Below the pieces are notes generated by a model. It worked only from the letters and a program-made list of their open reading frames with translations, did no database searches and was not told the origin of the DNA. Shown in pieces: positions 9,947-52,194 of a stretch of 64,000 nt of DNA (position 1 is its first letter; the number at the start of each line of letters is the position of its first letter). The stretch lies in the sequence record MZ475892.1. The stretch is one strand, 5' to 3'. A program made the position numbers and the translations under genes.

Positions 9947-10492
9947 ATGAAACATCCTCAGCGCGTTGCTCATTTAGAGCATTGGTTGGAGGCGGGTCGT
10001 GCCGCTTTCACCATGGGTGTGCGTACACCAAATAAAGATGGCGTGGAGCTGCTTGCTATTTTCCGTGCTGTGTCTCGTGGTACAAAAGACCAGTGCGCTG
10101 CATCAATCAAAAAGCAAACGGCAGAACTGATTGAAGACATTGAACGCGATGTGCCTGCCTTCAAAGTCATTCGTCGTCGCTTCCGCAAAGAGTTTTATCC
10201 AGACTACAACATACCTGCAGAAGTCGAGCTGTATGTTGCGCTTCTGGCAGAGACGTTCGGTGACATTGTGCAGACCATGACGTACCTGCATCTTCGTCGC
10301 TGTGTCGATACTAAGGACCTGTTGCTTAACTGGCTGCCAAATGGGTATCCAGCTAAAGACGCTATGGGTCTCCTGTGGAACTTACAGAAAGTGCCTACCG
10401 AGAACGAGTTCATGTTCACCGGAAATGCGGTAGATTGCATACAATCTGTAAATGACCTATACAACAAAATGTATAAGACAGGAGACAAGTAA
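9947..10492 (+). CDS. hypothetical protein
   Basis: 181 aa, AGGA RBS. Confidence 0.75.
   Translation: MKHPQRVAHLEHWLEAGRAAFTMGVRTPNKDGVELLAIFRAVSRGTKDQCAASIKKQTAELIEDIERDVPAFKVIRRRFRKEFYPDYNIPAEVELYVALLAETFGDIVQTMTYLHLRRCVDTKDLLLNWLPNGYPAKDAMGLLWNLQKVPTENEFMFTGNAVDCIQSVNDLYNKMYKTGDK
10446..10453 (+). promoter_or_regulatory. CTGTAAAT candidate phage promoter
   Basis: About 40 nt before ATG 10492. Confidence 0.6.
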
Positions 10493-11079
10493 TGGATTTA
10501 TCTTCTATCGGCTATGCAAACAAACCATTTCGCGTTATCCCTGTTACTTCTGGTAATATCGTAACTGATTTCATTGCCGGAAAGTTTCAGGTGATTGGCG
10601 TTGAGTGTAATGCTCGTGGCGCGTACGGCTCGCCGATTCAACAAAGCATTGCACGCCGCTTCCCTGACGTGTTGCAGAAGATGAACGCGCTCGACTACGA
10701 CCACCAGAACTTCATGGGCAGCACGTTGATGCATCCTGTGCAGACTCAGCATCGTCGTCGTTTGTTTGTCGCTAACATGTTCCTTGCACGCGGCTTTGGG
10801 TTAGGCCAGAATCGCACTCAAAGTGAAGGTCCGATTAATCGTTTCAGTGAGCGACACTTGACGCAAGCCTTCGACAGTCTTGTTGATAGCTGTGCATCAC
10901 TCAACATTAGTCTGGACCGCCAGATTGCTGTGCAGCGTTTCTACGGCGGTCTTGGTGGGGTATCTTGGGAAGAAGTATGTGAAGTGCTGGACGCTATTTG
11001 CGCCAAGCATAAATTCAACATGCTGGCTTATCTGCCTAAGAACTATAACTCTAACTTTGTGCGGGGTTCTGCGCAATAA
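10492..11079 (+). CDS. macrodomain protein (Poa1p/DarG-like)
   Basis: GNIV...CNARGAYGSPIQQSIARRFP and YGGLGGVSWEEV match the macrodomain GD/N-x-G-x-M-G and G-x-G-x-GG-x-x-W signatures. Confidence 0.7.
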   Translation: MDLSSIGYANKPFRVIPVTSGNIVTDFIAGKFQVIGVECNARGAYGSPIQQSIARRFPDVLQKMNALDYDHQNFMGSTLMHPVQTQHRRRLFVANMFLARGFGLGQNRTQSEGPINRFSERHLTQAFDSLVDSCASLNISLDRQIAVQRFYGGLGGVSWEEVCEVLDAICAKHKFNMLAYLPKNYNSNFVRGSAQ

Positions 11080-12597: not shown

Positions 12598-13368
12598 ATG
12601 AGCAATATCGATACCACAATGCCTGAAGGCAAATGGGAGTTCAACGAGTCGGTTGCTTGCGTGTTTGATAACATGCTGCAAAACTCCATCCCATCTTATG
12701 GCCGTATGCGTGACCTGACGTACCGTCTGGGTCGTCGCTTCGTAACTCCCGGTTCAGCTATCGTTGATCTCGGTGCTTCACTTGGCCGAGCTATCGAACC
12801 GTTTGCAAAAGAGTTCGGCAAGTATGACTACCATCATGCTGCTGACGCTCCTGGCGAAGACTACGAAACAGGTAATCACTATAGCCTGTATGAAGTAGCT
12901 CCTGCTATGCGTGAACGTCTGGTGCAGAATGAAGTGCTTCTCTCAGTGAATGCCAAACTGGAAAGTGAATCGCTGGTCGATGCAGACAGCTTCCTGTTTG
13001 ATGGCCAAGTGCATTGCTCGTTGATTCTGAGTGTGCTAACTCTCCAGTTCACGCCAATTGAACATCGTCAACACATTCTGGAAAACGTGTACAACTCACT
13101 GCAACCAGGCGGCGCATTCATCCTCGTTGAGAAGGTGTTAGGCGATAACAACTATCTCGACAAAATGCTGGTGGACACCTACTACCAGATGAAAGGCGGT
13201 AACGGTTACAGCGCCGAGTCGATTGCGACTAAACGTAAGTCATTGGAAGGCGTACTCGTTCCTGTTAAAGCAGCGTGGAACGAAGAACTGTTGCGTAAAG
13301 CAGGCTTCGGTCAGGTGGAGAGTTTCTACCGCGACCTGAACTTCGCAGGATGGATTGCTATTAAGTAA
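12598..13368 (+). CDS. cmoA: CmoA-like carboxy-S-adenosylmethionine synthase
   Basis: WEFNESVACVFDNMLQNSIPSY, DLGASLG, TLQF, LVEK, ATKRKSLEGV, NFAGWIAIK parallel CmoA motifs along the whole length. Confidence 0.85.
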   Translation: MSNIDTTMPEGKWEFNESVACVFDNMLQNSIPSYGRMRDLTYRLGRRFVTPGSAIVDLGASLGRAIEPFAKEFGKYDYHHAADAPGEDYETGNHYSLYEVAPAMRERLVQNEVLLSVNAKLESESLVDADSFLFDGQVHCSLILSVLTLQFTPIEHRQHILENVYNSLQPGGAFILVEKVLGDNNYLDKMLVDTYYQMKGGNGYSAESIATKRKSLEGVLVPVKAAWNEELLRKAGFGQVESFYRDLNFAGWIAIK

Positions 13369-13377
13369 GGAAATACT

Positions 13378-14640
13378 ATGAAAGTAAACGGGCGTATCTT
13401 AGCTATCGTCCCACACAAGACAATGCAAGACCGTACCAAGTCTGGTGTGGGTTCGTACATTGATGGGCTAGAGGCATACGGCTTCTGCGACTTTATCACG
13501 GACGGAGAGAACAGCTCCGTTACGAAAAGTCAGTGGTTCACTTACGGTGACACTACTCTCAGTGACGGTTATAAGATAGGGCATATCCAGAGCGAGTTGC
13601 TGATTGCACTTGAGCGCCTCCCATACCGTGCGATTATTTGCAGCACGTATGAGGCGATTGAAGCCTGTGTGTCTCTGGGACTGCCAAAGATTATGCCCGT
13701 TTACTATCGCACGCACAACAGCTTTTTGCTCACACAAGATCTCAAGGGTCTTGGTGCAGAGAAGATCCATCGTGCGTTGTTGCAAGCACGCGTCACAGGG
13801 CTGCGCATACTTGCTAACTGTGATTCGACTGCGATCAATCTTACTGAGCGCTATAAGACGCCAGCACACGTTGCCTACAACTCGTTCTCGGTGCCTGACT
13901 ACAACCCACCAGCTCGGCGTTCTCCGCAACTGTTGATTATCTGTCGCTATGAGAAGGTCAAGCGCACGCTGTTTGCTGCGCGTATTGCTGCTGCATCAGG
14001 ACTACCCGTTCGTGTTATGACAGGCAGTGATCGTCAAGCACGCAATTGGGAGAAAGAGCTGGCTGAGGCGGGCGTCAAAGAGTATACGGTCGTCAGTGGC
14101 CTTAGCGGCAAACAGAAACTCGAATTTATAGGCGCTTGCACCGTAGCCCTTTCTACTGCGAGCGTTGAATCATTTGCTAATGGTGTGCGTGAGTCTATCC
14201 CCTACTGTCCTACCTTTATCGTGCAAACATCCAAGTACGATTGGGCTAAGGACTATACGCGCTTCTGTACCGCCGACAAGCATGTTCATATCAGAACTGT
14301 TGATCGCGTATCGGACCAAGCCGTAGCTGAAATCGGAAGTGAGATAGCGCAAACAGCTACCACTCGTTATCTGACAGGACCTCAGCGTAAGCAGCTACTG
14401 ACTGCTTGGGCAAAGCAAGTTGATCGTGGTTGGTCCGACTTTGTCCAGAAGGCTGTTGTTGACGATGACGGCAAGCCGCTGCGCACCGAGCTGTATCAAG
14501 AACTGATCGACAAGTCAGAGATCGATTGGTCACAAACGCCCACGCTGATGCGTACTGTAAATGCGTTACATAAATGCCACGCTCGTTTGGGCCTGACATT
14601 TGATGGCACTAAAATCAAATATAAGAGGAAGCGCAAATGA
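13378..14640 (+). CDS. GT-B fold glycosyltransferase (GT4-like)
   Basis: 420 aa; ICRYEKVKR and STASVESFANGVRES resemble GT4 nucleotide-sugar-binding motifs. Confidence 0.65.
   Translation: MKVNGRILAIVPHKTMQDRTKSGVGSYIDGLEAYGFCDFITDGENSSVTKSQWFTYGDTTLSDGYKIGHIQSELLIALERLPYRAIICSTYEAIEACVSLGLPKIMPVYYRTHNSFLLTQDLKGLGAEKIHRALLQARVTGLRILANCDSTAINLTERYKTPAHVAYNSFSVPDYNPPARRSPQLLIICRYEKVKRTLFAARIAAASGLPVRVMTGSDRQARNWEKELAEAGVKEYTVVSGLSGKQKLEFIGACTVALSTASVESFANGVRESIPYCPTFIVQTSKYDWAKDYTRFCTADKHVHIRTVDRVSDQAVAEIGSEIAQTATTRYLTGPQRKQLLTAWAKQVDRGWSDFVQKAVVDDDGKPLRTELYQELIDKSEIDWSQTPTLMRTVNALHKCHARLGLTFDGTKIKYKRKRK
14555..14562 (+). promoter_or_regulatory. CTGTAAAT candidate phage promoter
   Basis: About 75 nt before ATG 14637. 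Confidence 0.5.
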
Positions 14641-15713
14641 GTGTTATCGGTGATATTTATAACATCCCACAACCTTTCGCAATGTATGTCGGGAATTGTG
14701 AGACGCGTGCTCAAGCCAAAGTTGCTGCGGGCACAATCGAGTGGGCGCCAGAGAAAGTGTGCTGCACCGTAGATGATGGTAACAACCTGTTCCCTAACGT
14801 ACCTTCAATCAACCCTGCTGACGTGCATAAGACAGATGCAGAAACTTTAGTGATTGGCTGTGCACCTTTCGGCGGCCGCATTGACGAGCACATGGACAAA
14901 GCTATTCGTAGCGCTATCTATCGTGGACGCAACATCGCTGCTGCTATGCATACGCGCCTGGCGGATAATCCTGAATACGTTGAGCTGGCTGATCGCTACA
15001 ACGTCAAGCTGTATGACTTCCGCCATCGTCCTGATGCGTACCCACTCGGTACTGGTGAGAAGCGTAGCGGTCTGCGTCTGTTAACTGTCGGTACTGATAG
15101 CTCATGCGGTAAGAAGTTTACCACGCTGTCTCTGTATCGTGAACTCAAAGCTATTCATGAAGCCACTACGTTCTGCTCTACTGGCCAGACGGGTTTCTTG
15201 ATTAGCGGTTGCGGTATCAACAACGACACGATTGTTGCCGACTTCCTTGCTGGTGCCGCTGAATCACTTTCGCCTGATGGTCCTGCTGATCATGTTTATC
15301 TGATTGAGGGTCAAGGCGCTATCACGCACCCAGCATACACAGGCGGCAGTATGAGTCTGATTGCTGGCTCGCAGCCTGATCATCTCATCCTGTGTCACGC
15401 ATGGAACCGTCAGAATCAGTTGGGCGTTAAGCGTAAGCCTGACCTTGATTTCGAGATGCGTGCTAACATTGAAGCGGCACGTATTCACGGTCTCAACCCG
15501 ACTTACATCGGTATCAGCATTAACTTCTCTGAGTGCGACCTCACCGCCGATGAGCAAGATAAAATCCTATACCAACTCGCATCAACGTATGAGATTCCCG
15601 TGTTCGACCCATCACAGGACACTTCTGTGTTGCGCGATCTCGCTCGTATGTTAGCAACTAAAGCCAAAGCAAGGAGCCTCGATGGCCAAGCATCAACTGC
15701 GCAAGCTGTTTGA
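14637..15713 (+). CDS. DUF1611 family P-loop protein (DgcN-like)
   Basis: LLTVGTDSSCGKKFTT, STGQTG, DFLAGAAE, IEGQGAITHPAY, GSQPDHLILCH. Confidence 0.88.
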   Translation: MSVIGDIYNIPQPFAMYVGNCETRAQAKVAAGTIEWAPEKVCCTVDDGNNLFPNVPSINPADVHKTDAETLVIGCAPFGGRIDEHMDKAIRSAIYRGRNIAAAMHTRLADNPEYVELADRYNVKLYDFRHRPDAYPLGTGEKRSGLRLLTVGTDSSCGKKFTTLSLYRELKAIHEATTFCSTGQTGFLISGCGINNDTIVADFLAGAAESLSPDGPADHVYLIEGQGAITHPAYTGGSMSLIAGSQPDHLILCHAWNRQNQLGVKRKPDLDFEMRANIEAARIHGLNPTYIGISINFSECDLTADEQDKILYQLASTYEIPVFDPSQDTSVLRDLARMLATKAKARSLDGQASTAQAV

Positions 15714-16557
15714 ACAGCATGTGAAAAAAGAAGTGAAAGCAGACAAGGTAGCTGTGCTGCTTTCATCTGGCCTCGATGGTTTGGTCAGTGCGTTAGCTGC
15801 ACACGACCTAGGCAAGAAGGTACATGCCTTCACATTCCAAATGGGTGACAACCCTAGCTTTGACAGTCGCCACGCACAGATCGTTGCACAGAAGATGGGA
15901 TGGGAGTTCACTCTCGTTAAAGTTCCCACCAGCGTGTCTGCTATCGCGTTAGCGTGGCGCGTGCTACACTCCAAGTATCGCTGCATCAAGAAGCGTGACT
16001 ATGAATGTGCGTACCCTATGGTCTATTGCTACAAGGCAATCAAAGACGCTGGGTATAAGTATGTGTTAAGCGGGCTGGTGGCCGATGGCTACTTCCTGTA
16101 TAACCGTAACACGCACATTCAGAAAATCAGCGGCCCGCACTCTGACGCTCAGAAGTATCATGAGTTCCGTACTCAATACTTTAGTCCGTGGCTTAAACAC
16201 GGTAAGAAGTCTCTGGGCGTTGACGGGTACAACCCGAGCGGTATGTTGCAGCATGAAATGTTGTGCGATAACTTCGGCCTGATTCACGTTAACCCGTGGA
16301 TGCAGAACAAGGTGTTTGACTACTTCATCAAATACACTTGGCAGGAGCTGAATCAGCCTAAGCAGAAGATGCCACTAACCGAAGCGTGGGCAGAACACAT
16401 TGCTCTTGTTGGTCATCGCCCACACAGGGGCTATCAGACAGAAGCCAAAGTGCCTGAATACTTTGAGCATCTGATCGATAACCCTGAGATTAACTTTAAC
16501 GGGCGCAAGCGCATCATGGACGTGGCACGCGACTGGTCCAAACGAGAGCCTGAATAA
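15682..16557 (+). CDS. asparagine-synthetase-like PP-loop ATP-dependent ligase lacking a glutaminase domain
   Basis: AVLLSSGLDG (SGGLDS variant), LSGLVADGYF, NPWMQNKV; 291 aa, no N-terminal Cys1 domain. Confidence 0.8.
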   Translation: MAKHQLRKLFEQHVKKEVKADKVAVLLSSGLDGLVSALAAHDLGKKVHAFTFQMGDNPSFDSRHAQIVAQKMGWEFTLVKVPTSVSAIALAWRVLHSKYRCIKKRDYECAYPMVYCYKAIKDAGYKYVLSGLVADGYFLYNRNTHIQKISGPHSDAQKYHEFRTQYFSPWLKHGKKSLGVDGYNPSGMLQHEMLCDNFGLIHVNPWMQNKVFDYFIKYTWQELNQPKQKMPLTEAWAEHIALVGHRPHRGYQTEAKVPEYFEHLIDNPEINFNGRKRIMDVARDWSKREPE

Positions 16558-28138: not shown

Positions 28139-29239
28139 ATGACAGGTCCTCTCGATCTCACTAACCCACAGCACTTCGAACTGTACTCGCTGCACAGCGT
28201 TGATGCACAGTATATCAATCTGTGTGACGCACTCCTCACTCAGGGTACGCACGAATCTGACCCAGAGCGCACTACTGATACGTGGCATACGCTGATCGGT
28301 ATTGGCTTCCAGTTGTCTAACACCAACATCGCTTTCCCTGCGCTGCTGTCTAAGCGTGTCAACGTCCGTGCAGCTATCGATGAATCATGCTGGTTCGCAC
28401 GCGGTGAAACGAACATCGCAACTCTCGGTTCTAAAATCTGGAACGAGTGGGCAGACGAAGAAGGTGAGAACGGTCCTATCTACGGCTTCCAGTATCGAAA
28501 CTGGCCTGACATTAAAGTGTTCAACACTGTCGAAGGTATGATTGAGCAGCACATCCCACCAGCAATGATTGAGCGCATCTCGAAAGAGATCAACCGCATG
28601 AAGGCGCAGGGCTATATCGAAACTGCGTTGCCTGATGGTCGCGTGCTGTATGAAGGCTATATCGATCAGTACGCTGATGCACTACGTCAAATCATGGCGC
28701 GTAGTCGTAGCCGCCGCATTCGTGTGCAAGCGTTCAACCCTGGTTACGTTGGTATGCAGAGCCTGCCTCCGTGTCACACTGAGTTTGAGTTCAACGTGAC
28801 CAAAGCTACTGCGTATGAAATTGCGCAGATGGAAGCACGCTCAATGCGCCCTGACGCTGACTCACTGCATATCGTGGTGACCATGCGCTCAAACGACGCG
28901 CTCTTGGGCAGGCCATTCAACATCGTTGGCTACAGCGCCATGCACCAGTTGTTTGCGAAGTGGGCGGGTCTGAACGTTGGTTCGTTTACTCTGAATGTGA
29001 CCAATATGCACATGTACGATCACCACCGCGAAGCGTATGCACAACAGCGTGAGCAGTGGCTGGAACTACAGACGCAGATGCAGACGACAGGCAAACCTGT
29101 TGTTTACCCTACCCTCGAAATCACTGACGACATTCTGGGCCTGACGCCAGAAGAGCTGCTGGATAACGTCAACGTCGATTGGTTCGAGCTGGTGGACTAC
29201 TCTCCTAAACCTGCTGTTAAAGGACGCGTAACCAAATGA
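28139..29239 (+). CDS. thyA: thymidylate synthase
   Basis: GPIYGFQYRNW, SRR, LPPCH, MRSNDALLGRPFN (Asn, dUMP-type), HMYDHH. Confidence 0.93.
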   Translation: MTGPLDLTNPQHFELYSLHSVDAQYINLCDALLTQGTHESDPERTTDTWHTLIGIGFQLSNTNIAFPALLSKRVNVRAAIDESCWFARGETNIATLGSKIWNEWADEEGENGPIYGFQYRNWPDIKVFNTVEGMIEQHIPPAMIERISKEINRMKAQGYIETALPDGRVLYEGYIDQYADALRQIMARSRSRRIRVQAFNPGYVGMQSLPPCHTEFEFNVTKATAYEIAQMEARSMRPDADSLHIVVTMRSNDALLGRPFNIVGYSAMHQLFAKWAGLNVGSFTLNVTNMHMYDHHREAYAQQREQWLELQTQMQTTGKPVVYPTLEITDDILGLTPEELLDNVNVDWFELVDYSPKPAVKGRVTK

Positions 29240-31238: not shown

Positions 31239-31937
31239 ATGGCAAAAATTGCTAAAGCAAAGGAAGGGAAAAAGAAAAGCAACCCTATGTTGATTGACCT
31301 GAAAAAGTTCAAGTCAGTTAAACAGCTTAAGGGTGCGAAGTACAACCCTCGTTTCATTACAGACAGCCGACTGAGAGCGCTCGAAGGTTCTTTGGGCAGC
31401 TTCGGTGATTTGTCTGGCGTGGTGTTCAACAACAGCGTAGACAGTGGCGTATTGATCTCAGGCCACCAGCGTCTCAAGTCGATTGAGAAGTGGGACTCGC
31501 GCATTGAGATTCAACAAACGTCTGACAAGTACGGCACGGTAGCGTTGGGTTATATCCATGCTACCAGCGCCAAAGGTAAAACGATCAGCATCCCACTGCG
31601 TATCGTTAACTGGTCAGATAAGAAAGTGGAGTTTGCTGCTAACATTGCTGCGAATGCCCACGGCGGTGAGTTCGATAACAAAAAGCTCGCGTCTCTTGTT
31701 GAGAAGCTGGACCTGACTACAATCAAGCCAGCTCTTATCGGGCTTGACCCGTTAGAGATTCGCGGCCTGCAACAGACGCTGAGCAAACAAGCTATCGTCG
31801 AGCAGGAAAAGCGTGTTGGTAAAACAACAGGCAAAATGAACGGCAGTACTGGCGAGTTCAAAGAGTACACGACTGATGAAGTTGGTACTGCGCTGACCTG
31901 CACCTGCCCACGTTGTGGCTTTAAGTTCGAGGGATAA
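31239..31937 (+). CDS. ParB/Srx-like nuclease domain protein with C-terminal Zn ribbon
   Basis: YNPRFI...GSFG...LISGHQRL; CPRCG at C-terminus. Confidence 0.8.
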   Translation: MAKIAKAKEGKKKSNPMLIDLKKFKSVKQLKGAKYNPRFITDSRLRALEGSLGSFGDLSGVVFNNSVDSGVLISGHQRLKSIEKWDSRIEIQQTSDKYGTVALGYIHATSAKGKTISIPLRIVNWSDKKVEFAANIAANAHGGEFDNKKLASLVEKLDLTTIKPALIGLDPLEIRGLQQTLSKQAIVEQEKRVGKTTGKMNGSTGEFKEYTTDEVGTALTCTCPRCGFKFEG

Positions 31938-31938
31938 C

Positions 31939-34074
31939 ATGATCATCAAGCCGCCTACAATGAAAGAGATTAATAAGCTGCCCAAGCCTTGGTCAGGTAT
32001 GAGTTTCTTTGCAGGTTGCGGTGGTTCATCTACCGGTCACAAGATGGCCGGTATTAACATCCTACTGAGCAACGAGTTCGTGGACGCGGCTCGTGAATCG
32101 TATGAAGCGAACCATCCAACAACCAAAGTGTTGCCCCACGATATTCGTCGTCTTGACCCGAAAAAGCTGCTTAGCTATTGCGGCCTGAGTCAGGGCGAAC
32201 TGGACTTGCTCGACGGCAGTCCTCCGTGCTTCACCGAAGACACGTTCATTCATACCGACACTGGTATGAAGTTCATCACTGATATGCGCATCGGTGACTT
32301 CGCTATGACCTCTGTTGGTAAGTATCATCCAGTGTATGACACGATGGTACGTCCGTATGACGGTCAGATGCACAGAATTGAAACGCTGCTTGGTCAGAAC
32401 AATGCAACGCCTGAACATCCGTTCTTTGTTCGTCGTCAGAATGAAGAAACTGGCGGGTACAGTGAGCCGTTCTGGTGTGACGCTAAAGATGTGCAGGAAG
32501 GTGACCTGTTAGGTACGCCTCGTGTTACGCCTGATATGGGCGAAGCACACACGCATGAGATTATCTCGTCGTTGACTGCGCAGCTTGTGCGTTGGATTGC
32601 ATTGCCTGAGTTCTGGTGGCTGATTGGTCACTGGTGCAATCGCGGTGCAATCGATAAGATTCGTGGTGTCGATGTTATTCAATTCACCTCGATGACAGCG
32701 ATGGAAAACTCGCTGGTGGAACAAGCGTTCGACGTGCTCAAGTTAAGCAGCATCAACAGCGCTTCGTCCGACATGGGCGTTCATCGTAAGACCGTTCGTG
32801 TTGTTATGGACACAGACCTGTTGCTGTTCTTGCGTATGTTTATCGCGCAGGGCAAGAAGTCTATGTCCCGCCGTCTGCCTGGCATGATCTTCCATCTGGC
32901 TAAAGAGCTGAAACAGCAATTCATTCTCGGCTATCTGGGTCGTGATTACGTCACAGCAATGGGCGTTGGTCATGCGTTAGAGGCTGACTCAAAGCGCTTC
33001 CTAGTTGAGATGAATTACCTGTGCTGCTCTGCGTTCAACAGACCGCTGTTCGATGCAATGTTGTTCACTGACTTGCATTACGGTAGTCCGATGTTACCAC
33101 CGAGTCGCTTCATTACCAAAGAGCACATCGGCTTCCTGTTCTTGCAAGAAGAGGTTAATTTCTTCTTTGAGTTCGAGCCGGAAGACCCGCATCTGTGGGT
33201 TGAAGTGATTGAGAACTTTACGCATCATGAAACGTGCAACGTCTATAACTTCTCAGTCAGTGTTGATGAGACGTATGTTGCTAACGGCATGGTCGTGCAT
33301 AACTGCAAAGGGTTCTCGACTGCTGGCGTGAAAGAAGACGGCTGGGGCAAAGAGGTTAAGTACAGCGGCAACAAGTATCAGCAAGTCGATGACCTGTTCG
33401 ATCAGTATTGCCGTATGCTCAAGCACATGCAGCCTAAAACGTTCACTGCGGAAAACGTTAGTGGCCTCGTTAAAGGTGCGTCGAAGGGTTACTTCATTGA
33501 AATCATGAAGACCTTTGATCAGCTGGGCTACTATGTGCGAGCGCCGTTGCTTAATGCTGCGTGGCTTGGTGTGCCTCAGTCTCGTGAGCGTATCATCTTT
33601 ATGGGTGTGCGCAAAGACGTGGCGAAAGCACTCGGCTATAAAACTGCGTTGACTGCTGTGCCTGATGTAACACCTCAATCAAGCATGGCGTTCCTTGCAG
33701 ATGCATTGCCGAACATTCGTCGTTATAAAGGTACGGAGCGTGACATTATCAAGTATCTGCCTGCTGTTAACGGCCCGATGCCTACGATTACCGCTGCTGA
33801 TGCTATCGCATACGAAACAGCACGCTTCTCCTCTGCTGGCTTCATTGAAGACGACAAAGGGCACAGACGCAAGCTGACGATTGACGAACTCAAAGTTGTG
33901 TCAGGCATGCCTAGTGATTACGTGCTCACAGGTAAGTTTGAAGAACAATGGGAACGTCTCGGTCGTGTGTGCGTACCTGCAATGACGTGTGCTGCGGCAA
34001 GCGCGTTGATACGCCATGTGCTTGAGCCTTACGCGAAGCTGCGTAAAAAGAAACCTGGGGATCGTTTTCGTTAA
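31939..34074 (+). CDS. C5-cytosine methyltransferase family enzyme with intein; probable carboxymethyltransferase
   Basis: FFAGCGG (I), DIRRL, GSPP|C (IV), ENVSG (VI), QSRER (VIII), RKLTIDE (IX), ERLGRVCVP (X with Arg for Asn); GAGGGA RBS. Confidence 0.9.
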   Translation: MIIKPPTMKEINKLPKPWSGMSFFAGCGGSSTGHKMAGINILLSNEFVDAARESYEANHPTTKVLPHDIRRLDPKKLLSYCGLSQGELDLLDGSPPCFTEDTFIHTDTGMKFITDMRIGDFAMTSVGKYHPVYDTMVRPYDGQMHRIETLLGQNNATPEHPFFVRRQNEETGGYSEPFWCDAKDVQEGDLLGTPRVTPDMGEAHTHEIISSLTAQLVRWIALPEFWWLIGHWCNRGAIDKIRGVDVIQFTSMTAMENSLVEQAFDVLKLSSINSASSDMGVHRKTVRVVMDTDLLLFLRMFIAQGKKSMSRRLPGMIFHLAKELKQQFILGYLGRDYVTAMGVGHALEADSKRFLVEMNYLCCSAFNRPLFDAMLFTDLHYGSPMLPPSRFITKEHIGFLFLQEEVNFFFEFEPEDPHLWVEVIENFTHHETCNVYNFSVSVDETYVANGMVVHNCKGFSTAGVKEDGWGKEVKYSGNKYQQVDDLFDQYCRMLKHMQPKTFTAENVSGLVKGASKGYFIEIMKTFDQLGYYVRAPLLNAAWLGVPQSRERIIFMGVRKDVAKALGYKTALTAVPDVTPQSSMAFLADALPNIRRYKGTERDIIKYLPAVNGPMPTITAADAIAYETARFSSAGFIEDDKGHRRKLTIDELKVVSGMPSDYVLTGKFEEQWERLGRVCVPAMTCAAASALIRHVLEPYAKLRKKKPGDRFR
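32227..33303 (+). mobile_element. intein (359 aa) with degenerate LAGLIDADG region
   Basis: CFTEDT start, ATPEHPF block B, VVHN end, Cys +1 is the catalytic Cys; LIGHWCNRG and FILGYLGRD remnants. Confidence 0.92.
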
Positions 34075-50590: not shown

Positions 50591-51121
50591 TTATACCTGG
50601 AACGACAGATCGAGGAAGCGATATGCCTGACTGGTCTTAATCGTGCCGCCGATGAACTGTAGTTCAGCATCAGAGCCTTCTGCACCAACAGTGCCGATAA
50701 TCACAGGCCCTGCAAGCAGCGTACCAGGAGAAGACGTTAGCATGAAGTTAGCCCACGAAGCCACAGCAGCCGCACCAGCAGCGGCAACGATACGAGCTAC
50801 GAAGTAGGTAGGTGTACCATCAGCCACGCCAACAAGTGTACGACTACTACCCGCAAGAGGCAGAGAGATTGTACGAGATGAAGGGTTGACAGAAGGTGTA
50901 AGGTTATCAATGGCGATAGAGCCAAGGAAGTTAGCCTGCGTCAAACCTAAACCTGTACCACCCAGCACGTTCCAACCCGAAGTCAGAGACATAGCCATGA
51001 GATTTTTCATCTGAGGCTTAGTGCCTTTAAACAGACCGATATGCAACGTATTTGCAGCAATTGCGGTAGCGGGAAACACTGAGTTCAGTTGAGCCAAAGA
51101 AAGGCCACGGTTACTAATCAT
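50591..51121 (-). CDS. putative virion protein, family A
   Basis: LFKGTKP, GTPTYF, GTVGAEGSDAELQFIGG. Confidence 0.8.
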   Translation of the reverse strand: MISNRGLSLAQLNSVFPATAIAANTLHIGLFKGTKPQMKNLMAMSLTSGWNVLGGTGLGLTQANFLGSIAIDNLTPSVNPSSRTISLPLAGSSRTLVGVADGTPTYFVARIVAAAGAAAVASWANFMLTSSPGTLLAGPVIIGTVGAEGSDAELQFIGGTIKTSQAYRFLDLSFQV

Positions 51122-52194
51122 ACGCCTCTCCCTACGATTGCGTCAGCACGAACTTTGAAAGCAGGTACAGGCACGTCCGTAAACTTATCCAGCGTGTAAG
51201 TTGCGTCACGCATGTAAATATCCGAAGTCGCGGCTTTCGTCAGGTCATCTGTGATAGTCACGTGGAACATCGCGCAGTAACGGCCAAGCACTGTAGTAAT
51301 AGCAGCAGGATAGTTGAAAGCCCACTCAGTGGTAGTAGTATAGCCCGCGGCAGGGATTACATGCAGCATAGTCATGTGCTTGTACTTGCCCAATGTACGT
51401 GGCTTGGTAGTGGTATAGTTGCCAAAGAAATGCAAACCAAACGGATAGTGACCAACAGTAGACCACGGGAAGGTCGGGTTCTTATTCACTACGCGGAACT
51501 TCTGCGCTTTAACAGAAGCAGGAAGAACGTAATGATTCGAACCGTAGTTAGTGGACACACGGGTAGCTGCGTATACGTCCACTGCATCTATCCACTGCCC
51601 GTCAACTTGAGCCTGCAAAATAGTTTGCTGGGTATTCGTTATCATGTACGTGCTGTTGGTAGAACCACATGTTGTGCCGAGGATGCTCTTGAGTTCAATC
51701 TCTGCACCGAAGTCGTACTCAGCACACAGCCACCAGCCTTCCGCAGTTGTGTTATAGATATTACTTAACACGCGGTTGCCTGATGTAGAGAAGGCAACAA
51801 TCGTATCAAAGTGATGCGCAATCATCGCAGCAGCTACAGCCTCGTTGTAATACTGAGCCTGAATAGAGAAACGCTGATCGATAGGTGCGAAACGAATTTT
51901 AGGCACGATACGCTTAGCACCAGCAGGCACGGCAATAGCTGAGTTACGTGCAACGGTTTCGATCCAAGAAGGAACAAAGTTGTTACCGCTAAACGTTGTA
52001 TTGCTAATGCTTGGCGTAAACTGAGAAGCGATTGGCGATCCAATACGCGCCATGTTAAACAGACGTATAGCAACAGCTTCATTGAATGCGCTGTGAATCC
52101 CTTTCTCACCATCGGCAGGAGCATCAGTATCATAGAGCAGACCAAAATACTGAGCGTTGCCTGACAGCAGAGGGTTGTACGGTAGAATCTCCAT
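51118..52194 (-). CDS. putative virion protein, family B (discoidin-like insert)
   Basis: AEYDFG, WIDA, AQKFRVV. Confidence 0.78.
   Translation of the reverse strand: MEILPYNPLLSGNAQYFGLLYDTDAPADGEKGIHSAFNEAVAIRLFNMARIGSPIASQFTPSISNTTFSGNNFVPSWIETVARNSAIAVPAGAKRIVPKIRFAPIDQRFSIQAQYYNEAVAAAMIAHHFDTIVAFSTSGNRVLSNIYNTTAEGWWLCAEYDFGAEIELKSILGTTCGSTNSTYMITNTQQTILQAQVDGQWIDAVDVYAATRVSTNYGSNHYVLPASVKAQKFRVVNKNPTFPWSTVGHYPFGLHFFGNYTTTKPRTLGKYKHMTMLHVIPAAGYTTTTEWAFNYPAAITTVLGRYCAMFHVTITDDLTKAATSDIYMRDATYTLDKFTDVPVPAFKVRADAIVGRGV

Follow-up and report, generated by a model that had tools for sequence, protein, structure and literature searches.

Erwinia phage pEa_SNUABM_34 (MZ475892.1) is a jumbo phage of Erwinia amylovora with a genome of 264,306 bp. 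The 8 kb surrounding the motif X codon discussed below agree with this record at 100% identity and identical coordinates. The window analysed here, a stretch of 64,000 nucleotides from this record, contains an open reading frame (ORF) whose product is, judging by its sequence, very probably the precursor of a CmoX-family DNA cytosine C5-carboxymethyltransferase acting by the mechanism set out below. Every gene in the stretches inspected, the CmoX ORF included, is a 'hypothetical protein' in the deposited record. Among proteins of solved structure, the nearest relative is SpCmoX from Synechococcus phage S-B43, a cytosine C5-carboxymethyltransferase crystallised with carboxy-S-adenosylmethionine (Cx-SAM; PDB 8YF3; Yang et al., Nat Commun 2025, PMC12783734). 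The gene is organised as follows:

31939..34074, + strand: CmoX precursor ORF, 711 residues from the annotated ATG at 31939; cytosine C5-methyltransferase fold split by an intein.
31939..32226, + strand: N-extein, 96 residues; motif I FAGCGGSSTG, predicted cofactor contacts F24, E46, F47 and D68, and S94-P95-P96 of motif IV.
32227..33303, + strand: intein, 359 residues; Cys1, block B TPEH, block F/G VYNFSVSVDETYVANGMVVHN; LAGLIDADG-like region in the centre, its first motif apparently degenerate.
33304..34074, + strand: C-extein, 256 residues plus stop; catalytic Cys, motif VI AENV, motif VIII QSRER, target-recognition region, motif IX and motif X ERLGR.
33304..33306, + strand: TGC codon of the catalytic Cys of motif IV, equivalent to SpCmoX C98 and also the intein +1 nucleophile.
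33964..33966, + strand: CGT codon of the motif X Arg, giving G-R and not G-N; equivalent to SpCmoX R350 and M.HhaI N304, and predicted to bind the carboxylate of Cx-SAM.

The ORF listing extends the frame upstream to a GTG at 31915, and a GAGG lies 8-9 nucleotides 5' of the ATG at 31939.

Family and fold of the split enzyme

Pfam detects the C-5 cytosine DNA_methylase family (PF00145, 6e-38) in two stretches of the ORF, with an Intein_splicing/Hint_2 signal between them. The original prediction, made from the letters alone, held that the intein must come out before the protein is aligned; this is correct. The exteins were joined at the protein level for searches and fold prediction, the joined sequence being the expected splicing product, a mature protein of 352 residues. 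In phmmer searches of the PDB, 8YF3 is the top match of both the C-extein (5.8e-33, against 3.4e-12 for M.HaeIII and 2.5e-06 for M.HhaI) and the N-extein (1.4e-19, against 1e-4 for M.HaeIII). An AlphaFold2 model of the mature protein (predicted local distance difference test score 92.6, predicted template modelling score 0.92) has 8YF3 as its best PDB match in Foldseek (E 4e-27, template modelling scores 0.74/0.78), ahead of M.HaeIII and M.HhaI; the 4e-27 compares with 8e-20 for the SAM-dependent methylases. Motifs I, IV, VI, VIII, IX and X of the C5-methyltransferases are all present in the alignment.

The protein thus resembles SpCmoX, its best match in both sequence and structure, in fold, motif content, the SPPC of motif IV, the Arg at the R350 position and the other contacts to Cx-SAM. 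It differs in its degree of identity (about 31% in the C-extein and 55% in the N-extein), in the 359-residue intein at the catalytic Cys and in a shorter target-recognition region. M.HhaI and M.HaeIII share the fold, the catalytic Cys mechanism and the motif order, and M.HhaI N304 is the equivalent of the Arg; they are SAM (S-adenosylmethionine) users with Asn in motif X, and match at 1e-12 to 1e-6 as against 1e-33 for CmoX. Transfer of the GC target of SpCmoX to the present enzyme was considered and rejected: the target-recognition region is shorter and does not align, so that the GC specificity is not transferable.

The paper describing CmoX defined 5,615 candidates by SPPC and an Arg at the R350 position (PMC12783734). 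By sequence, the predicted mature protein has every feature used in that definition. The names Erwinia, Dickeya and SNUABM do not occur in the supplements of the CmoX paper, an absence that does not settle membership among the 5,615 candidates.

The motif X arginine and the predicted supply of Cx-SAM

The original prediction placed an Arg codon, CGT, at 33964-33966, where C5-methyltransferases have the conserved Asn of motif X. The codon lies within EEQWERLGRVCVPAMT, in frame with the ORF (31915/31939..34074, + strand), and alignment to the solved structures agrees with the placement. The quoted peptide, ERLGRVCVP, is right but spans 33952-33978; the interval given for it, 33955-33975, covers RLGRVCV, a trivial offset. 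The Arg is residue 684 when counting starts at the GTG (31915), residue 676 from the ATG (31939) and residue 317 of the mature spliced protein (Arg317).

The placement of the Arg is based on sequence alignment to the sequence of the crystal structure and on agreement at the level of the fold. The HMMER alignment sets QWERLGRVCVP of the query against QTERVGRMVPP of SpCmoX and puts the Arg on 8YF3 chain residue 350 with high posterior probability, and a MAFFT alignment with SpCmoX and PaBG (a Pseudomonas jumbo phage) gives the same correspondence. The alignment of the intein-removed protein that the original prediction proposed as a check brings the Arg onto SpCmoX R350; its correspondence to M.HhaI comes from a weak, sub-threshold alignment in which ERLGR of the query lies on KQFGN and ends at N304. 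M.HaeIII reads G-N in the aligned motif X, and the G-N that marks canonical C5-methyltransferases is replaced by G-R in the phage protein. The remaining Cx-SAM contacts of SpCmoX (F25, E47, F48 and D69) are all identical (F24, E46, F47 and D68). SPPC (S95-C98 of SpCmoX) is also kept: S94-P95-P96 close the N-extein and the Cys opens the C-extein, so that the motif becomes contiguous only after splicing.

The predicted role of the residue has precedents. In the crystal of SpCmoX with Cx-SAM, Arg-350 replaces Asn-304 of M.HhaI and directly contacts the carboxymethyl group; the wild-type enzyme accepts Cx-SAM only, and the R350N mutant has no activity (PMC12783734). Engineering placed a Lys at the equivalent position of M.MpeI (N374K) and M.MedI (N377K); this Lys forms a salt bridge with the Cx-SAM carboxylate and confers carboxymethyl transfer (PMC12015181). 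The R350 contact and the Lys enzymes together bear out the claim of the original prediction that the residue lies beside the sulfonium substituent and that a basic side chain there accommodates the carboxylate of Cx-SAM. The engineered enzymes (PMC12015181; cited in PMC12783734) resemble the phage protein in that a basic side chain at the motif X Asn position enables formation of 5-carboxymethylcytosine (5cxmC). They differ in having Lys and not Arg, in their derivation from CG-specific bacterial methylases, in the retention of SAM activity and in the absence of an accompanying CmoA or ligase. That an Arg replacing the motif X Asn signals the use of Cx-SAM is already published, and the present finding is confirmatory in this respect; the CmoX family was described in December 2025, so that the core idea of the original prediction is not new.

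The Arg is conserved among relatives. In an alignment of the mature protein with its 120 best homologs (121 sequences), the motif X column holds Arg in 115 sequences, Asn in four and Met in two, whereas SPPC, ENV and QxRxR are invariant. Arg is thus the conserved state of the clade and no chance substitution, as read from this alignment.

Among the 5,615 candidates, CmoX genes were reported to be accompanied by genes for CmoA, for an AMP-forming ligase and for a ParBc protein (PMC12783734). All three kinds of gene lie inside the window:

12598..13368, + strand: CmoA homolog, 256 residues; predicted carboxy-SAM synthase (SAM + prephenate to Cx-SAM); tblastn with SpCmoA 4e-22.
15682..16557, + strand: CmoY-like ATP-dependent amide ligase, 291 residues; 33% identity to SpCmoY over 275 residues, 9e-45.
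31239..31937, + strand: ParB-like protein (ParB/Srx N-domain), its stop 2 nucleotides before the CmoX start; phrog_620 'ParB-like partition protein', 2.3e-31.

When the S-B43 proteins were compared by tblastn, piecewise, with the complete genome, the window as well as the 200 kb outside it, a single CmoA homolog (4e-22) and a single CmoY homolog were found, with no further copies of either in those 200 kb. The top NCBIfam model for the CmoA homolog is TIGR00740 CmoA (1.5e-39), its best PDB matches are E. coli CmoA (4GEK, 3.9e-28) and H. influenzae YecO (1IM8), and it matches phrog_4752 at 2.9e-78; its ortholog in the related phage Y3 is annotated as a carboxy-SAM synthase. At chain residue 213 of 4GEK, a position with a role in prephenate binding, the phage homolog keeps the Arg. 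The ligase (PF00733, 1e-13) has the PP-loop domain of asparagine synthetase without the glutaminase domain. It is 87% identical to its counterpart in phage AD1 and 60% to that of a metagenomic module described below, and matches the ligases of Y3 and phage Yoloswag at 28-29% over about 130 N-terminal residues. The ParB-like ORF, which has no match in Pfam, adjoins CmoX and is 44% identical to its homolog in PaBG and 83% to that in Y3; PaBG, TurkishDelight (a Streptomyces phage) and metagenomic relatives have the same ParB-CmoX pair. S-B43 likewise encodes CmoA and an amide ligase of the asparagine-synthetase type. The present phage differs in that its CmoX is separated from CmoA and the ligase by 15-19 kb instead of adjoining them, and in its additional GT-B-like (glycosyltransferase-like), DUF1611 and ParB-like partners.

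Across phages, motif X and phage-encoded CmoA are distributed as follows:

Erwinia/Dickeya phage group: motif X Arg; phage CmoA present.
PaBG: motif X Arg; phage CmoA present.
S-B43 group: motif X Arg; phage CmoA present.
TurkishDelight: motif X Arg; phage CmoA present.
Moraxella phage Mcat8 (L011, 1198-2268): motif X Arg (ERMGR); no phage CmoA found at E<1e-8.
Aphanizomenon phage CL131: motif X Asn; no CmoA found in the phage group.
Flavobacterium phage Fpv5: motif X Met; no CmoA found in the phage group.

CmoA accompanies the enzyme in all 48 Erwinia and both Dickeya phage records. For Mcat8, the host may be the source of Cx-SAM, as E. coli could be for SpCmoX. Two Asn-type clade members (P0051 and P0060), considered as a control for the absence of CmoA, were dropped because their contigs of just 5-6 kb are uninformative. 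The closest intein-free homologs of the Arg type (P0002 and P0005) have the ParB-CmoX pair and no CmoA or ligase within 10 kb, a layout that matches the split arrangement here and is no confirmation of co-occurrence.

The closest intein-free relative from a sequenced phage is gene 177 of PaBG (KF147891), 48% identical, with the motif X Arg, a ParB-like partner directly upstream, and CmoA and asparagine synthase genes following. The PaBG cluster differs in lacking the intein and in its compact order (ParB, CmoX, CmoA, hypothetical, ligase); its ligase is 24% identical, it has neither a glycosyltransferase-like nor a DUF1611 gene, and it is likewise known from sequence. TurkishDelight has a compact cluster (L012, 1038-6066) of two ParB-like genes, an Arg-type CmoX, an asparagine synthase with a glutamine-amidotransferase domain and a CmoA-like methyltransferase. 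This cluster fits the second ligase cluster of the CmoX paper, for which use of ammonia and a carboxamide product were predicted (PMC12783734). Separately, twelve Pseudomonas phage records of about 90 kb (for example, JQ067090.1 PaMx31 and KU245542.1 SM1) contain a gene resembling CmoA, 30% identical across 83% of the query; the same records have no match to the CmoX C-extein.

An ordinary SAM-dependent methyltransferase forming 5-methylcytosine (5mC), in which the Arg is a neutral replacement of the motif X Asn, would account for the fold and for the complete set of C5-methylase catalytic motifs, and relatives of the protein are annotated 'DNA-cytosine methyltransferase'. We consider this highly improbable: the position contacts the transferred group, and its Asn is kept in M.HhaI, M.HaeIII and CL131 as well as in M.MpeI and M.MedI (PMC12015181); among solved relatives, a carboxymethyltransferase leads by about 20 orders of magnitude in E-value; and the Arg occurs together with two phage-encoded proteins, CmoA and an amide ligase, that would serve no purpose if the base were 5mC. 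That the enzyme is not an ordinary methylase, as originally predicted, is supported both by a sequence and predicted fold nearer to CmoX than to any methylase and by the Cx-SAM synthase homolog of the phage.

An enzyme with two cofactors, which uses Cx-SAM and also methylates usefully with SAM, would leave a mixture of 5mC and 5cxmC (or their derivatives) in the phage DNA. Such relaxed use is known from M.MedI-N377K, which carboxymethylates efficiently and still methylates >99% of its substrate with SAM, and from M.MpeI-N374K, which keeps partial methylation (PMC12015181). We think this unlikely for the phage enzyme. Its natural relative SpCmoX takes Cx-SAM only and shares all its cofactor contacts with it, the phage encodes its own CmoA, and the retention of Arg in 115 of 121 sequences suggests a specialised pocket and not a relaxed one. 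Because a basic residue at this position is by itself no proof of the exclusion of SAM, exclusive production of 5cxmC by the present enzyme, here extrapolated from SpCmoX, is put forward as what its kinship would predict.

The intein at the catalytic cysteine

The N-extein ends in LDGSPP, the insert begins with CFTEDT and ends with VVHN, and CKGFSTAG follows. The intein-free relatives read GSPPCKSFSTSG (PaBG) and GSPPCSAFSVAG (SpCmoX) at this site, which places the insertion point within motif IV, precisely after the second Pro and directly before the catalytic Cys (GSPP|C). The residues of a class 1 intein are present (Cys1, TPEH, VYNFSV..DETYVAN..VVHN and the +1 Cys), and the intein matches phrog_36001 at 8e-149. 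They are unchanged in the inteins of Y3 (66% identical) and Yoloswag (40%) and in metagenomic inteins at the same site, including a mini-intein of 171 residues. An intein occupies this position in all 48 Erwinia and both Dickeya phage records. It resembles the class 1 inteins of phage replication and nucleotide-metabolism enzymes in Cys1, TxxH, the terminal HN and the +1 Cys, and in its insertion at the most conserved active-site residue; it differs from them in that the host protein is CmoX.

The intein has no Pfam match to a LAGLIDADG endonuclease. Comparison by eye of the region at about 32800-33100 (HWCNRGAI and YLGRDY here, as against FLGDGWV and YVSADG in a metagenomic allele) suggests that the first LAGLIDADG acidic residue appears to have been lost. 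At the same SPP|C site, other homologs have a 259-residue form without recognisable LAGLIDADG motifs (P0004) or the 171-residue mini-intein (P0017), and the full-length, 259-residue and 171-residue forms follow the course of decay usual for homing inteins. In the present intein, the middle region still has a ratio of nonsynonymous to synonymous substitution rates (dN/dS) of about 0.23-0.30.

If the intein did not splice, the Cys would never be joined to SPP, and the gene would be an inactive relic in which the Arg is irrelevant. The endonuclease motifs do look degenerate; Pfam Intein_splicing (PF14890) scores 34.8 bits (1.8e-08), just below its gathering threshold of 35.8, and Hint_2 (PF13403) scores 21.9 against a threshold of 28.4. 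Moreover, the intein is present in every sequenced Erwinia and Dickeya relative, and the group has no intein-free allele for comparison. Even so, a relic seems to us scarcely credible. The intein retains Cys1, TPEH and the terminal HN, followed by the +1 Cys, all of them invariant across alleles that share just 37-66% identity overall. The gene is open in three lineages at synonymous divergence (dS) >1, with dN/dS of 0.09-0.17 in the exteins and 0.15-0.24 in the intein, values that are rough because synonymous sites are saturated. An intact frame and such low dN/dS would be unexpected for a dead gene and indicate a maintained one. Competence of the present intein to splice is a prediction from its conserved residues only, with purifying selection on the exteins pointing the same way.

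The word 'intein' appears nowhere in the CmoX paper or its supplements (PMC12783734), and a literature search on inteins in cytosine methyltransferases returned nothing relevant and no report of an intein in the CmoX family. Elsewhere, cytosine methyltransferase genes of Escherichia jumbo phages of about 350 kb (ON568341.1, UE-S1, 50956-51627; OP557969.1, ph0011; ON286972.1, A4) hold distant homologs of the intein (24-28% identity). Inteins in phage genes of the C5-methyltransferase fold may therefore be more widespread.

Accessory genes, proposed pathway and significance

Two further genes lie between CmoA and the ligase:

13378..14640, + strand: GT-B-fold glycosyltransferase-like protein, 420 residues, identified by fold comparison.
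14637..15713, + strand: DUF1611/DgcN-like protein, 358 residues; PF07755 (2e-46) and PF17396 (5.5e-18).

The 420-residue protein has no match in Pfam, PHROG or NCBIfam, and none in the PDB by phmmer even at E<1; a homolog (P0127) has a weak match to PF00534. Its AlphaFold2 model (predicted local distance difference test score 81.5) finds the GT4-like proteins SenB, GlgM, BshA and MshA at the top of Foldseek (E 1e-9 to 1e-7). The gene is present in only 21 Erwinia phage records. The DUF1611 protein matches NF041892 DgcN at 2e-86, a score below the cut-off of that model, and PDB 7XRJ at 4e-53; it is 76% identical to AD1_017 and 49% to the corresponding metagenomic gene, and is possibly an acyl-CoA-dependent N-acyltransferase. 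A literature search on DgcN/DUF1611 returned only unrelated acronyms.

All six genes recur in one row on a metagenomic contig (L018/L019): ParB-like (44% identity), CmoX, glycosyltransferase-like (37%), DUF1611 (49%), ligase (60%) and CmoA-like methyltransferase (41%). In the CmoX of this contig, motif X reads ERIGR, and an intein again interrupts SPP|C. Since the six genes are colinear in an unrelated contig, the glycosyltransferase-like and DUF1611 genes are not bystanders.

The cassette adjoining CmoA varies among sister phages that are otherwise syntenic. It comprises the glycosyltransferase-like gene, DUF1611 and ligase A in the present phage (12598-16557), and CmoA is followed by DUF1611 and ligase A (87% identical) in AD1 (L016, 5001-7700). 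In Y3 (L015, 5001-7592) and Yoloswag (L017, 4998-7585), CmoA (83% and 70% identical, respectively) is followed by a non-orthologous ligase B and a 2-oxoglutarate- and Fe(II)-dependent (2OG-Fe(II)) oxygenase, the latter absent from the window. This variation predicts different final bases in close relatives. The CmoX paper and its supplements make no mention of a glycosyltransferase, DUF1611 or an oxygenase (PMC12783734).

Two other loci of the window are recorded here. A thymidylate-synthase homolog (28139-29239) of 366 residues, as against about 264, has insertions relative to ThyA profiles and lies 2 kb upstream of ParB-CmoX; in a metagenomic relative of the same layout (L020), a Thymidylat_synt gene of 353 residues lies 1.3 kb upstream of that pair. 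For the gene at 10492-11079, the sister phages Y3, AD1 and Yoloswag have positional equivalents annotated as O-acetyl-ADP-ribose deacetylase or Appr-1-p processing (macro domain) proteins; the copy in the window has no significant match in Pfam.

In the proposed pathway, the 359-residue intein would excise itself and join GSPP to CKGFSTAG, restoring motif IV with the +1 Cys as the catalytic nucleophile. The phage CmoA homolog would convert SAM and prephenate to Cx-SAM. The mature enzyme would flip the target cytosine, Cys97 would attack C6, and C5 would receive the carboxymethyl group from Cx-SAM, whose carboxylate would be held by Arg317 at the position of the Asn of ordinary C5-methylases. 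The product, 5cxmC in phage DNA, would then be amidated by the CmoY-like ligase, which would adenylate its carboxylate and join it to an amine, and the GT-B-like and DUF1611 proteins may decorate it further with a sugar or acyl group. The purpose would presumably be to shield the 264-kb genome from host restriction.

Several observations weigh against this assignment. The CmoA homolog scores 136 bits against TIGR00740, short of the equivalog cut-off of 193, and is only 28% identical to SpCmoA; it and the ligase are distant from CmoX. The residues that follow the motif X Arg are VCVPAM, as against a clade consensus of AVPPxM, and the Arg does not alone exclude SAM, as M.MedI-N377K illustrates (PMC12015181). 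The intein falls short of the Pfam threshold, its splicing competence is read from conserved residues, and the saturation of synonymous sites blunts the dN/dS values. Finally, a literature search covering Y3, AD1, Yoloswag, PaBG and the SNUABM phages returned nothing on DNA modification, restriction resistance or biochemistry.

Beyond the CmoX paper, the locus adds an intein at the catalytic Cys, a split module of six genes with glycosyltransferase-like and DUF1611 members, and the swapping of ligases between sister phages. A joint reading of these features can be offered only tentatively, and we lean somewhat against it. The six-gene module (ParB-like and intein-split CmoX at 31.2-34.1 kb; CmoA, GT-B-like, DUF1611 and ligase at 12.6-16.6 kb) might make a previously undescribed cytosine hypermodification in which an amide of 5-carboxymethylcytosine also bears a sugar, an N-acyl group or both, and Y3 and Yoloswag, with their exchanged ligase and their oxygenase, might make a different base. 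The locus would then be a hot spot at which the DNA chemistry of nearly identical jumbo phages diversifies, and intein splicing could also gate the timing of enzyme activity.

If the assignment of the ORF product to CmoX is right, a group of jumbo phages (48 Erwinia and two Dickeya records) carries carboxymethyl-derived cytosines in a genome of 264 kb. Some phages of the group are used or considered for the biocontrol of fire blight, and restriction sensitivity, sequencing, cloning behaviour and the interpretation of host range would all be affected. The CmoX system would extend from a cyanophage to enterobacterial jumbo phages with tractable hosts. The glycosyltransferase-like and DUF1611 genes and the exchanged cassette of ligase and oxygenase suggest that more amide-linked DNA modifications exist; the CmoX authors expected such modifications and did not identify them (PMC12783734). 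An intein on the catalytic Cys of a DNA-modifying enzyme would also be a compact natural case of an activity that exists only after splicing.

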